From: Adineta vaga
Taxonomy: Eukaryota > Animalia > Rotifera
NCBI GenBank assembly: GCA_021613535.1
Contig: CP075493.1
Span: forward strand, 9,610,001-9,674,000
Length of the DNA stretch: 64,000 nt
Direction: 5' to 3'
Of the stretch, positions 42,775 through 48,644 are shown piece by piece. Positions within the stretch are counted from its first letter, which is position 1; every line of letters begins with the position of its first letter. Made by a program: the position numbers and the translations under genes. The notes under the pieces are model-generated. The model did not search any database. It had not been told where the DNA came from and saw nothing but the letters and a program-made list of their open reading frames with translations.

Positions 42775-44070
42775 CTAAGCTTTATCTAATTGCACCATTA
42801 ATAAACGAAAACTAATTGATGATGACGATAGAATTCGATTGCATTCTTGTGAACTAATCGGTAATTTTAAATATTCTGTTTCGGTATTATTTTGATTGAA
42901 TTCAAAATGATAAATAATCGGTTGAATCGGAATATTTGCCGGATCACCATGTGGTCCTTTGAGAATGAAAAATTTCAAATCAATAGTTTGACTAACTTTC
43001 GATTTCAATACTAATTGATAACTTAATGAACGTGTAACTGTTGTATGTGGATGTGGAATATTATCATTAATACGAGCACGTACTTGCCATTGATATTGTA
43101 AGGCTGTAAAACGTGAAGTTTCAAAATAAAGTTTAGCAACAAAATCATCGGTTCGAAATGGTTTTAAAATTAAATCTAAAATCAGATATTTTCTGTTCAC
43201 TTTATTCTTCATACAAACTTATCAACTTACCACTAACGCTAATTTGATTAAGTGAAAGTAGATCAACAACTGTTTCGAGACATTTTTTTTCTTCATCATA
43301 TGTTTTCTTATGTGCTTGAATAGTACTGATTAATTCAGAGCCGTTTTTTCTCGGATATTGACAAGCAATTAAATGGGATGCTAATTTATGAAAAGAACCA
43401 TTCCATGGACATCCAAGTAATACATAATCACAAATAGTTGGTCTAAAAAGAAAGAATAGAATTGATATTTGAATGACCTTTTTTGAATTCATACCGATCA
43501 AGACAATTTTCTGTTTGATGAATTTTAATTTCGGATCGTAAGAATATCTGACGACAATAATGACATTCAATCGGTAATTCAGAAATGGTTTTTTCTGCAG
43601 CTAAATTTCTTATACAATTTGATTTCGATATTTCACAACGACAATTCGGACTAAAAAGCAAAACAAAAATCAAATTTAATCGAAGAATGCAAATACAATT
43701 ACCATGTTGTTTGTTCATCTTTTAATTTACAATCGGCTAATAAATGATTAAAACAAGATGCACACATAAGATGACCATTGACACACTAAAAATCGAACAA
43801 AAAATACTTTCATCATTCGAAAGAAAGAAATTCTACTTGAAACATTGCTAATGTTGAAAGATCCAAACATATACAACATGAAAGAATCGATCCAATTCGT
43901 TCTTCAAGTAAACGTGGTTTATCAGTTGTTTGATTTTTAAATCTCTTTGCTAGTGGTTCATTGATTTCAGTTGAATTGATTGATGACAAATCTGTTGTCG
44001 TTGTTAATGATGGCGTTTCATTATCAGGATTTTGTTGAACATCATTGATCGAAATTGTTGCTTCAGCCAT
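42775..44070 (-). CDS. CYHR1: Cysteine- and histidine-rich protein 1 (RING + TRAF zinc finger)
   Basis: [84 protein letters not shown]. Confidence 0.9.
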
Positions 44071-44461
44071 AATCATAAAATCACAACAGAACGAAAAAAT
44101 TTCCACGTGAGCGACGCGTTCAATCAGGTGACGTCATTTTGCCATTGATTGGTTTATCGTGTTAAGATAATGAATTCTTCTAAACCCGGAAGGAATTTCT
44201 TGAATTATTAAAATAAAAATTGAATTTAAATAGATTTTTTTCATGCTCTTAAATATTTTTCGTATATCGAAAACTTCATTAGAATTATATGATTGGTTAA
44301 TTGAAATAACCAATAGAAATACAGGCCGATTATTTCGTCTGGATTTCATAATGTCAAGATAATCACAAAGTAGATTAGATTAGGACAGACGTAGTCTGTA
44401 TTTTCTATATCGTTTTATTTTCTTAATGATTATTTTTCGTCGTTTTTTTTCCAAACTCCAG

Positions 44462-45040
44462 ATGACTAAAAAACCATTATCAATTGTTGTAGCATTAGAT
44501 GATTGTAATGGTATTGGACGTGATAATACACTTCCATGGCATATTAAGAATGATCTGAAATTTTTTCGTTATATAACAACAAAGAAAATCGATTCAACGA
44601 AACGAAATGCAATTATTGTCGGACGAAAAACATACGAAACATTTCCAAAACCATTACCAAATCGATTGAATATTGTTTGTAGTCGAAATCAATCATTACC
44701 AAATATAAATTATCCCAATGTAATTCGTGTTGATACATTCAATGATGCTATAAAATATGCAATAGAAGATGCAACAATTGAAAATATATTTGCTATTGGT
44801 GGTGTTTCGATTTATGAAGAAGCCATGAAAACAAATCTTGTTAAACATGTATTTTTAACTCGAGTAAAAGGTGATTTTCATTGTACAGCGGTTTGGTCAT
44901 CATTTAACGTATCGGATTTCAAACGTCTGGAACCAATTCCTGATGAATATCAACAATTTTTTAATCAGTCCGATGAAAATCAAGAGGAGAGTGAAAAAAC
45001 ACCGGCATATCATTTAGAAATTTATGACCGAGATATTTGA
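44462..45040 (+). CDS. DHFR: Dihydrofolate reductase, intronless CDS (possible upstream in-frame start at 44426)
   Basis: IVVALDDCNGIG..NTLPWH...DLKFF, NAIIVGRKTY, KPLPNRLNIV, IGGVSIY. Confidence 0.95.
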   Translation: MTKKPLSIVVALDDCNGIGRDNTLPWHIKNDLKFFRYITTKKIDSTKRNAIIVGRKTYETFPKPLPNRLNIVCSRNQSLPNINYPNVIRVDTFNDAIKYAIEDATIENIFAIGGVSIYEEAMKTNLVKHVFLTRVKGDFHCTAVWSSFNVSDFKRLEPIPDEYQQFFNQSDENQEESEKTPAYHLEIYDRDI

Positions 45041-45100
45041 AAACTTTTTTTTTTTCTTTCTTCTTAAACTCAAGTTTTATATTTTCTGTTAACTTTTCAG

Positions 45101-45557
45101 ATGACATCTAATGAGTCAACATCGACAACTGCTGCTAGTAATGCTAAAGTCACATTTAAAATCACTTTAACTTCAGATCCAAAATTACCATACAAAGTGT
45201 AACTATGATTTGATTTGCTTATATAATCGATCTCATCGATATATTCTAGTTTGAGTGTACCAGAAAATACACCATTTACTGCTGTTTTAAAATATGCAGC
45301 TGAAGAAGTATGTGAATCAGTTTAATCAATGAATAGATTGGAATTTCTTTGTATATTTAGTTTAAAGTACAAGCAGCTACAAGTGCCATTATTACGAATG
45401 ATGGAATTGGAATCAATCCATCTCAAACAGCTGGTAAGATAAATACGACACTATCATTCTGTGAAGATAGATATATTTTGTTATTGCAGGCAATATTTTT
45501 CTGAAACACGGTGCCGAACTTCGAATTATTCCACGTGATCGTGTTGGTTTTTATTGA
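45101..45557 (+). CDS. UFM1: Ubiquitin-fold modifier 1 (absent from ORF track)
   Basis: Four exons: [18 protein letters not shown]|[19 protein letters not shown]|[24 protein letters not shown]|[22 protein letters not shown]. Confidence 0.97.
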
Positions 45558-45681
45558 TATCATCAAAATCTAAATTATTCGTTTTGAATATTTAATCTTT
45601 TATTTTAAATAAATAAATATAAATGTTATCGTTATTTCAAGTTTCTTCGGACAAGCATTTATATTCTTCTCTTTTGATTAG

Positions 45682-46567
45682 ATGTCATCTTCTCCTTCAC
45701 AATCTACACTACCAACATTACCAAAATCAGACTTCGATGCAAACCATCTCGAAGAAGAACATGTGCATAAAGTTTATAATAATATCGCTCATAATTTTAG
45801 TGATACTCGTCATAAACCATGGCCACGTGTAGTCGAGTTTCTTCGTTCATTTCCTAGTGGTTCACTTATTCTTGATATTGGTTGTGGTAATGGAAAATAT
45901 ATGAATATTCGACATGATTTAATGATGGTAAAGATTTTCTTTTTAGTTTTGATAATGGATTTTCTTTCTATATTAGATTGGTTGTGATCGAAGTGAAGGA
46001 CTTCTAAAGATATGTCGTGATCGACATTTTCAAGTTTTTCTTTCTGATTGTATGAAAATTCCTGTTCCAACCAATATGTTCGATGGTGCTATTTGTATTG
46101 CTGTTCTTCATCATATTAGTACGGAAGTAAATGAAAGAAAAAAAAAGCGGAATTTTATAGTTTTATATTGATTCTGTTTCTGATATTAGAATCGAAGATT
46201 ATTAGCTTTGAAAGAATTCGTTCGATTATTAAAACCAGGTGGACAAGCATTGATTACTGTTTGGGCAAAAGAACAAGAAGTTGAAAATAAAAAGAGTACA
46301 TATATTACGAAAAATGCTAAATCATGTCCGATTCATCAAAAACATGAGCAAACTGATGAATTAATTATTCATACACCTCGAACAGAATTTCAACGATCTG
46401 ATTGTCTTGTTCCATGGAGTAAACCCGATGAAAAATTATTGAGATATTATCATGTATTTGTTCAAAATGAACTTGAACATATATTGAATCATATATCTGA
46501 AGTGAAAATTTTGAATTCCTATAATGATGATGGAAATTGGTGCATTATATTTATGAAAATAGTTTAA
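45682..46567 (+). CDS. Trm9/ALKBH8-type tRNA wobble-uridine methyltransferase (stand-alone MTase domain)
   Basis: LEEEHVHKVYNNIAHNFSDTRHKPWP, LDIGCGNGKY, IAVLHHIST, ALITVWAKEQ, VPW..RYYHVF..EL, GNWC. Confidence 0.9.
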
Positions 46568-46598
46568 ATTGATATTTGTTTTACTTTTCAGATAGATC

Positions 46599-47252
46599 AT
46601 GTCGGATGTATCTATTCCATTTCTTTTTCAAAAGTCTGTAGCACTTAGTTCATATCGTGATCGACAATTTCGAGTATGAGAAAATGTTCTTTTTTCTTTT
46701 TCTGTTTTACAAAAATTCAATCTTTTAGGGTAATGAAGGAGAACAAGATAAAAAATTATTACAAAGTACAACACTTTATGTGGGAAATTTATCATTTTTT
46801 ACTACTGAAGAACAAATTCATGAATTATTTTCACGTGCTGGTGATGTCAAACGTATTATTATGGGTTTAGATAAAACAACAAAAACACCATGTAAGATTT
46901 TCTCATTCGTAGATTGTGAAATGCAATTTCTTTTAGGTGGATTTTGTTTTGTTGAATATTATACAAGAAGTGATGCTGAAGAAGCAATGAGATATATTAA
47001 TCAAACTCGTTTGGATGATCGAATTATTCGAACGGATTGGGATGCGGGATTTATTGATGGACGTCAATTTGGTCGGGGAAGAAGTGGTGGACAGGTTAAT
47101 CTTTTTTTTTTTCTATTTCGTTATCGTTTTTTGTCATTGAATTAATCTAGGTCCGTGATGAATATCGAAAAGATTATGATCCAGGCCGTGGTGGTTTTGG
47201 CAAACGATTTAATCCTGGAATGGAAATGGAAAAAGGAAGTGGTCTTGTTTAA
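46599..47252 (+). CDS. NCBP2: Nuclear cap-binding protein subunit 2 (CBP20)
   Basis: [76 protein letters not shown]. Confidence 0.96.
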
Positions 47253-48644
47253 TTTCTTGACTGTATATTTGTTCTTTAAAAGCAAACAAAAACAATAAAT
47301 CTAGAAAAGTTCTTTTGTGAATTAGGAAAAAAAAATACGATATTTTCTTTCAAATCCATATTCTGATAAATTATAATATGAGATTTATCGGAAAGTTAAT
47401 TTCTAAATACGGCAAATATAGAGCTGATCTTATGAAAGACTTTTTTGTTTATTGAAAACGATAATGAAAAAAAACTGCGACGATTATTTTCTCGGCACAT
47501 ACATTGATGTTTTTGAGTAAAAAAAAGTAATTTAACAGAATCGTCAGTCGGAAACACAGTCGAGCACAGTTTGACGTTCTGTAAAAGAGTTAAAAACTCC
47601 GAGTAACAATTTTGTTCATTTCACAAGAATTAATTTTTTTGTAATTAGAATTGTTGTCGTTATTGTTTAGAACATTTCTCATGACATGAAATGTGCGCTC
47701 TCACAAGCGAATTATTATGAAATAACAGACTTAACGCTTCTATATAAGATCTCCTGGACGATAAGCATACTATTTAATTGAATAATCTACAAAATACTAT
47801 TAGATGATTAAACTAATCAAGTTTTTATTGGAAAAATTATTAATATATAATTTAATCTTTCTAAACTCAATGACTGTTTTTTAATACAAAATTTTTATCT
47901 AATCACATACAGACTTAAACCTAGAGTGAATAATTCAACCGGATATTTATATTCACAATTACTTATAGACATTCTATATTAGATATTTTTGCATTGATGT
48001 CAGTTATTGAAATGCGTTAGAAGTACGAAGTCCTAAAGCTTGTTATGTCTACAAAATACAATAGGTTTAAAAAAAAGCCAGTTATGATGTTCCTAGCGAT
48101 GATAATTGATCTTCAATGTCAAGCATCTCATGTCATTCACAAGTTCGTTTATTACTAAAAAAAGTACTTATTTGATTGTCATATAAATGTCCATAGACTG
48201 CGTAGTTTATATCACTATTTATAACAACATGTGCATGTTTAAATAGAGTAAAAGATAAAAACAGATATCTTAATTAATTGAACGCCTACGACTCTAGATT
48301 ATGTCGTTTTCTATGAATATATCATGATAGAAAGAAGTTTTTTTTTAATATAAATTCTATTGATATCTCGTCACAAATTTATTTCGATGTCTATCAGTAG
48401 AATTGTTTTTTTATTTAAGAAGAAGAGGAATAAAGCACTCATACAATCAATAACTATACAAAAGAAAAAGGTAGATGCATGGATAAGAAATACACGCCCG
48501 AAAAACAAAATCATTTGAAAAACAAAACAACGGAATGTGATGGCAAAGAAGAGAAAGAATTAAAGAAACAGAGATATATGTGTACACGTAACTAGTCATC
48601 ACTGGTTTTGTTTCGAGAAAGAAAAATAAAATGAGAAAAATAAT

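Follow-up and report, generated by a model that had tools for sequence, protein, structure and literature searches.

A compact DHFR-UFM1-Trm9-NCBP2 cluster conserved among bdelloid rotifers is probably an operon resolved by spliced-leader trans-splicing

Here, we describe a cluster of four co-oriented genes in a 64,000-nucleotide stretch of the genome of the bdelloid rotifer Adineta vaga (contig CP075493.1, positions 9,610,001 to 9,674,000; hereafter the window, to which bare coordinates refer). The genes encode DHFR, UFM1, a Trm9/ALKBH8-type methyltransferase (Trm9) and the cap-binding protein NCBP2. We conclude that they probably constitute one transcription unit that starts in the divergent region shared with a CYHR1-like gene and is resolved into separate mRNAs by spliced-leader (SL) trans-splicing. 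An SL-resolved polycistron had been proposed at this locus from its letters alone (the original prediction). In its favor are RNA contigs that bridge the spacers between silent flanks, 58 SL genes in the genome, acceptors conserved among relatives, the lack of cis joints onto these acceptors, and an SL joined directly to the Trm9 start codon in another bdelloid; no SL junction, however, was found in A. vaga itself.

Nematodes, tunicates, flatworms and chaetognaths are well known to have SL-resolved operons. According to a 2021 survey operons were not reported in rotifers, and our literature search found no published report of rotifer operons.

Results

Four unrelated genes are separated by short spacers with splice acceptors

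The cluster and its divergent neighbor are laid out as follows.

42775-44076, minus strand: CYHR1-like zf-TRAF gene, the divergent neighbor, homologous to carriers of PF28124 (CYHR1_TRAF_C) in the related contigs L013 and L014
44077-44425, no strand: divergent intergenic region of 349 nt, the presumed promoter region of the cluster
44426-45040, plus strand: DHFR, cistron 1, a single exon with in-frame ATGs at 44426 and 44462 and its stop at 45038-45040 (DHFR_1, 4e-33)
45041-45100, plus strand: spacer 1, 60 nt, with a T-rich tract and acceptor AG at 45099-45100 and without AATAAA
45101-45557, plus strand: UFM1, cistron 2, exons 45101-45198, 45250-45307, 45361-45433 and 45490-45557 (Pfam Ufm1 on exons 1 and 3)
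45558-45681, plus strand: spacer 2, 124 nt, with AATAAA at 45608 and 45612 and acceptor AG at 45680-45681
45682-46567, plus strand: Trm9/ALKBH8-type methyltransferase, cistron 3, exons 45682-45927, 45977-46126 and 46190-46567 (Pfam Methyltransf_11)
46568-46598, plus strand: spacer 3, 31 nt, with acceptor AG at 46590-46591, 7 nt 5′ of the ATG, and without AATAAA
46599-47252, plus strand: NCBP2/CBP20, cistron 4, exons 46599-46673, 46729-46891, 46937-47094 and 47151-47252 (Pfam RRM_1 on exons 2 and 3)
47294-47335, plus strand: terminal AATAAA at 47294-47299 and poly(A) site near 47335

All gene models follow GT..AG, and every internal intron is backed by RNA contig joints. Protein searches were run exon by exon (Pfam), via in-frame read-through of NCBP2 intron 2, or via the intronless contig L028 from a relative. 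The Trm9-like gene corresponds to NCBI I4U23_003107 [Adineta vaga], whose 257 aa equal the length of the present model, and the closest non-rotifer matches of its protein carry the names ALKBH8 or KIAA1456. Homologs of the last gene bear the name nuclear cap-binding protein subunit 2. The original prediction had named four unrelated, co-oriented housekeeping genes with gaps of 60, 124 and 31 nt, which is exact in the gene models and agrees with Pfam; its statement that the last gene encodes a cap-binding protein is likewise borne out by RRM_1 and by the homolog names. If DHFR is modeled from its second ATG, the gene spans 44462-45040. On the other side of the divergent region, the CYHR1-like gene has three minus-strand introns that are backed by RNA joints, and one contig extends to 44078.

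The start codons of the cluster stand in an uncommon context. Across the window, just 7 of 2903 ATGs (0.24%) directly follow a YAG preceded by a tract with at least 9 pyrimidines in 12 positions, and the starts at 44462, 45101 and 45682 are three of these seven. The NCBP2 site, whose AG lies 7 nt before the ATG, satisfies the same pyrimidine/YAG criterion. The acceptor contexts that the original prediction quoted for all four starts are correct as letters. Within the cluster, AATAAA is confined to the UFM1-Trm9 spacer and to the region 3′ of NCBP2, and a signal scan thus agrees with the prediction that UFM1-Trm9 would be the only gap to hold one.

The SL is joined directly to the Trm9 start codon in a related bdelloid

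SL trans-splicing in bdelloids is described as known since 2005, and PMC1925144, citing Pouchkina-Stantcheva and Tunnacliffe 2005, gives more than half of bdelloid mRNAs as reported to be trans-spliced. We scanned the A. vaga genome (100.8 Mb, six contigs) for the published 23-nt bdelloid SL (PMC3795323, Table 1) followed by a GT donor and found 58 copies, while a reversed control gave 0. The sequence downstream of the SL folds better than 200 of 200 shuffles (z -3.2). One extra leader change is present in 16 of the 58 copies, namely an A at position 10 in 8, ACAAATT in 3, TACTT in 2, CGAAGAG in 2 and AAAAGG in 1. The SL RNA genes are mostly arranged as divergent pairs with 5′ ends ~131 nt apart and are clustered on contigs 2, 5 and 6 (e.g., L001:1495-1690). 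An Rfam match between an SL gene pair and MIR821 (127.8 bits; gathering threshold, 249) was rejected as a generic long hairpin with little sequence identity.

A direct junction was found in L028, a 1482-nt Logan contig from run SRR5248432. This contig is RNA-derived, with Trm9 and NCBP2 both intronless. It opens with CTTACCAAGAG|ATG, in which the last 11 nt of the SL are joined directly to the Trm9 start codon. A 61-nt spacer follows the Trm9 stop and leads into the whole of NCBP2; the spacer's acceptor (tttctag) is unspliced and lies 10 nt ahead of the ATG. The nearest proteins are from bdelloids, and the top match of its Trm9 is that of A. vaga (74%). At least one bdelloid thus uses the Trm9 acceptor for trans-splicing.

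The SL-bearing bdelloid transcripts that we found are L026, L027 and L028. Metagenome contigs scanned for the SL followed by AT yielded two SL-bearing transcripts, both for Rab GTPases and thus uninformative for the cluster genes, and a cluster look-up returned no further RNA-derived members. An SL junction for UFM1 or NCBP2 was seen in no A. vaga or relative contig. Of the SL junctions for which the original prediction suggested a search, one is thus seen on Trm9 in another bdelloid, and none was found in the A. vaga contigs.

RNA contigs run through all three spacers

A. vaga RNA from four runs in three studies, all in the form of assembled contigs, was aligned to the window. These contigs are RNA-derived, as all internal introns of the cluster (counted as ten) and three CYHR1 introns are removed from them. 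Contigs from runs X1, X4 and X5, which represent two studies, bridge the spacers. Spacer 1 lies in contigs that cover 44513-45198 and are spliced onward to UFM1 exon 2 (X1, X4 and X5). Spacer 2 lies in contigs that cover 45489-45926, with spliced UFM1 exons before it and spliced Trm9 exons after it (X1 and X4), and spacer 3 in contigs that run from 46367 or 46378 to 46673 and are spliced onward to NCBP2 exon 2 (X1, X4 and X5). Bridging of the gaps had been proposed as a check of the polycistron, and bridging contigs are present at every gap, although an assembled contig need not represent a single molecule.

The flanks are silent. None of the four runs covers 44120-44407, DHFR contigs begin at 44483 or 44513, and there is no coverage past 47335 in any run. 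An X5 contig terminates at 47335, ~40 nt after the AATAAA, in additional A's and then adapter-like letters. Both the introns and the flanks are empty of RNA, and the spacer coverage is therefore unlikely to stem from DNA contamination.

The contigs also bear on the acceptors. Among the 12 joints in the four runs, none lands on 45101, 45682 or 46592, which indicates that no cis donor feeds these sites. Each downstream cistron therefore starts at a 3′ splice acceptor without a cis donor. Furthermore, a Trm9 contig in X5 starts exactly at 45680, the acceptor AG. This is as expected from a branch in the assembly graph between SL-joined and unspliced forms, both of which end in AG.

One joint within Trm9 (46277 to 46354, AA..AC, a 76-nt skip) and loose ends at 46244 and 46277 were excluded, as they come from a duplicate Trm9 on contig 4 and not from this locus. 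The contigs that align at 46244-46354 are transcripts of that duplicate (65% identical), which is therefore expressed.

Gene order and acceptors are conserved among bdelloids

Loci from relatives were fetched via homologs of DHFR, NCBP2 and Trm9; the DHFR-based Logan contigs among them (L015, L017, L020 and L030-L034) are genomic or undecidable and were used for gene order only. No contig matched the DHFR protein of the window exactly, in a look-up from which records of the A. vaga genome may be missing. The block, or a version of it that lacks UFM1, is present in about 12 bdelloid loci (DHFR 60-79% identical). Rotaria socialis retains the whole arrangement, with CYHR1 on the minus strand followed by DHFR-UFM1-Trm9-NCBP2 at gaps of 86, 123 and 38 nt. 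L030, from a more distant bdelloid (DHFR 62% identical), has all four genes in the same order, and L031-33 (DHFR 60% identical) have DHFR-UFM1-Trm9 with a first gap of 0 nt. In the latter (L031:2370-2420, also L032 and L033), the DHFR stop TAG abuts the UFM1 ATG and doubles as the acceptor AG, while the DHFR coding sequence contains the pyrimidine tract. Several loci without UFM1 stay tight as DHFR-Trm9-NCBP2. In L015 the two gaps measure 20 and 22 nt, in L018 34 and 30 nt, and in L034 33 and 44 nt. DHFR-Trm9 is also present in Adineta steineri, and the divergent CYHR1 arrangement is kept in Rotaria socialis, Adineta steineri, L016 and L020.

Across these loci, the intercistronic gaps range from 0 to 158 nt. 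The spacers vary in both sequence and length, and an acceptor is kept at all downstream junctions. The spacer-1 acceptor is kept in L014, L030 and L031-33, at gaps of 86, 30 and 0 nt. Nearly all UFM1 and Trm9 starts have an acceptor that abuts the ATG; in Adineta steineri it lies 32 nt upstream. In each of the seven related loci with an NCBP2 junction, the acceptor AG of NCBP2 lies 7-26 nt 5′ of the ATG. Polyadenylation signals follow the same division as in A. vaga. All five UFM1-Trm9 spacers examined contain AATAAA (length 99-158 nt), and the short junctions lack it; their sole match is an ATTAAA in L034 that lies 3′ of the acceptor. A public gene model of Adineta steineri (P0182, 381 aa) fuses a Trm9-like methyltransferase and the NCBP2 RRM in one protein, which is probably an annotation artefact of a very short spacer.

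The duplicate on A. vaga contig 4 keeps UFM1-Trm9 (G000:C4:2515400-2517000; L025:6401-7965) with a 158-nt gap, AATAAA and an acceptor that abuts the ATG. This copy is without DHFR and NCBP2, and a CYHR1-like gene lies ~5 kb off.

Outside bdelloids, the NCBP2 gene of the monogonont Brachionus calyciflorus (L029:6001-6426) appears intronless, a phosphofructokinase gene ends ~1.3 kb upstream of it, and no Trm9, UFM1 or DHFR was found within 6 kb upstream. Brachionus ESTs are without SL (PMC1925144). Gene order in other rotifers had been suggested as a check on the predicted operon. The outcome favors it in that the block is kept across bdelloids; the Brachionus calyciflorus neighborhood differs.

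Independent promoters are the main alternative

Several observations weigh against a single SL-resolved unit. Not one of the four acceptor sites shows SL letters in the A. vaga contigs. Such a lack would be expected if assemblers clip short tips, as they usually do with a 23-nt tip common to thousands of mRNAs, but it still counts as an absence. The 5′ end of DHFR (44426-44482) is without contig coverage. Synteny in close relatives extends to the kinase gene that flanks the cluster, and conservation of gene order by itself is therefore no proof of operon constraint. Moreover, an assembled contig is no proof of a single molecule that covers two genes, and mean contig depth differs among the cistrons (e.g., in X5, 39 for Trm9 and 173 for NCBP2). 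Unequal depth fits an operon but is equally expected from separate promoters, which may lie within the upstream coding regions.

These last points lead to the most serious alternative, which we consider unlikely. It holds that the genes are tightly packed but independent, with promoters inside upstream coding regions and trans-spliced 5′ stretches, and that the bridging RNA consists of unspliced 5′ sequence and overlapping 3′ untranslated regions. Contigs cannot tell such an arrangement from a polycistron, the depths just given would suit it, and operons of C. elegans are known to contain internal promoters. However, several relatives have gaps of just 0-35 nt, too short to hold a non-coding promoter, and the A. 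vaga contigs reveal no RNA start or branch inside the upstream genes besides that at the Trm9 acceptor. Order, orientation and tightness have furthermore survived both deep divergence among bdelloids and the loss of a gene.

If a single 5′ leader exon near 44400 were joined in cis to one or another of the four acceptors, this would explain why a good 3′ splice site precedes each ATG. This alternative, which had been offered alongside the original prediction, is now hard to credit, because the joints of the four RNA runs include none from an upstream donor to 45101, 45682 or 46592, the contigs are unspliced through the spacers, and the Trm9 acceptor receives the SL in L028. Ordinary compact packing with overlapping untranslated regions and no trans-splicing, in which the AG before each ATG would be start-codon context or chance, fits a compact genome and the lack of SL in the A. 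vaga contigs, but is highly improbable given the rarity of this context among window ATGs, its retention at all downstream junctions of divergent loci and the direct SL junction in L028.

A model for the processing of the cluster

Under SL-resolved polycistronic transcription, the four-gene unit would be transcribed from a single promoter in the 349-nt divergent region shared with CYHR1. The primary transcript would then be cut into monocistronic mRNAs by addition of the 23-nt SL at 45100/45101 (UFM1), 45681/45682 (Trm9) and 46591/46592 (NCBP2); we infer SL addition at all three A. vaga sites, as well as the order of processing. Two conserved types of junction would be handled in this way, one long and with AATAAA (UFM1-Trm9, 99-158 nt) and the other short and without it (DHFR to the next gene and Trm9-NCBP2, 0-86 nt). 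Because the UFM1-Trm9 spacer is long and contains AATAAA, it allows a conventional 3′ end of the upstream mRNA to be made before the acceptor is reached. At the short junctions, formation of the upstream 3′ end would have to overlap with use of the downstream acceptor, either in competition with it or coupled to it.

Both types have counterparts in C. elegans. The UFM1-Trm9 junction, in which AAUAAA stands about 70 nt ahead of the acceptor, resembles the SL2-type (~100-nt spacer), and the bdelloid junctions of 0-31 nt resemble the SL1-type, which has no spacer and in which upstream 3′-end formation competes with downstream trans-splicing. The SL1-type comparison was already drawn in the original prediction and proves apt, given that DHFR and UFM1 abut at a gap of 0 nt in one relative, where the stop TAG itself supplies the acceptor AG. 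In contrast to C. elegans, we know of no operon-specific SL2-like leader in bdelloids.

Tunicate operons (Ciona, Oikopleura) are similar in that a single major SL serves lone genes and clusters alike, gaps range from tens of nt to zero, the genes are unrelated housekeeping genes, and the acceptor lies at or a few nt before the ATG (general knowledge; PMC1488885, PMC7986045). They differ in phylum and SL sequence, and the bdelloid UFM1-Trm9 junction keeps a ~100-160-nt spacer with AATAAA; the comparison sets tunicate processing against one that is inferred for bdelloids. The chaetognath Paraspadella gotoi belongs to the nearest phylum (Gnathifera) with SL-resolved operons, and its operons likewise have no operon-specific leader and favor housekeeping genes (PMC12460157). 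In that species, however, operons were defined genome-wide with support from SL reads (PMC12460157), whereas we describe a single bdelloid locus with indirect support in A. vaga. The chaetognath SL is also unrelated to that of bdelloids, and PMC12460157 argues for independent origins.

Finally, the short bdelloid junctions, which are without AAUAAA and conserve only the downstream pyrimidine tract and AG, recall the polycistrons of kinetoplastids, where trans-splicing and polyadenylation are coupled. Bdelloids differ in that they use AATAAA at the UFM1 and NCBP2 3′ ends and have only some genes clustered, and coupling in bdelloids is hypothetical.

The block order is kept across at least two bdelloid families (Adineta, Rotaria) and the block stays tight after gene loss; if our reading is true, the cluster would be a clean first example of an operon in the phylum. 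Such an example is relevant to the question of whether SL trans-splicing always gives rise to operons and, given chaetognath operons, to the ancestral state in Gnathifera. It is also relevant to annotation, as the fused Adineta steineri model illustrates.

DHFR has a conserved upstream start codon

An in-frame upstream ATG (44426 in A. vaga) and a basic, hydrophobic extension of 12-15 residues are present in 10 of 10 distinct bdelloid DHFR loci (L013-L018, L020, L030, L031 and L034 were compared). The A. vaga extension (44426-44461) comprises the 12 residues M-I-I-F-R-R-F-F-S-K-L-Q (MIIFRRFFSKLQ; variants elsewhere), and some changes among loci are synonymous. The extension looks like a short targeting presequence. 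In 8 of the 10 loci, a pyrimidine tract and AG occur 0-10 nt before the second DHFR ATG, inside the upstream frame, and trans-splicing at such a site could thus eliminate the upstream start. For DHFR, the acceptor at 44461 given in the original prediction is correct as letters, but the position of this AG (44460-44461) is not conserved in relatives and falls inside a conserved upstream reading frame.

A more tentative extension of the model is put forward here as a speculation. Bdelloid operons may combine AAUAAA-directed 3′ ends at long junctions with a kinetoplastid-like mode at AAUAAA-less junctions of 0-86 nt, where the downstream pyrimidine tract and trans-splice site would also set the upstream 3′ end. 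In addition, trans-splicing of DHFR could choose between a targeted isoform (upstream ATG) and a cytosolic isoform (second ATG).

Upstream of DHFR, a CRE-like TGACGTCA is present at 44129-44136 in the divergent region and recurs in L017, L018 and L020. It is absent from L013, L014, L016 and L031-L033, each with at least 450 nt upstream; four other loci are too short to judge. Because it recurs in some loci only, we did not take TGACGTCA as evidence of a conserved promoter. Elsewhere in the A. vaga genome, DHFR has a single further match, on contig 3 and 35% identical.

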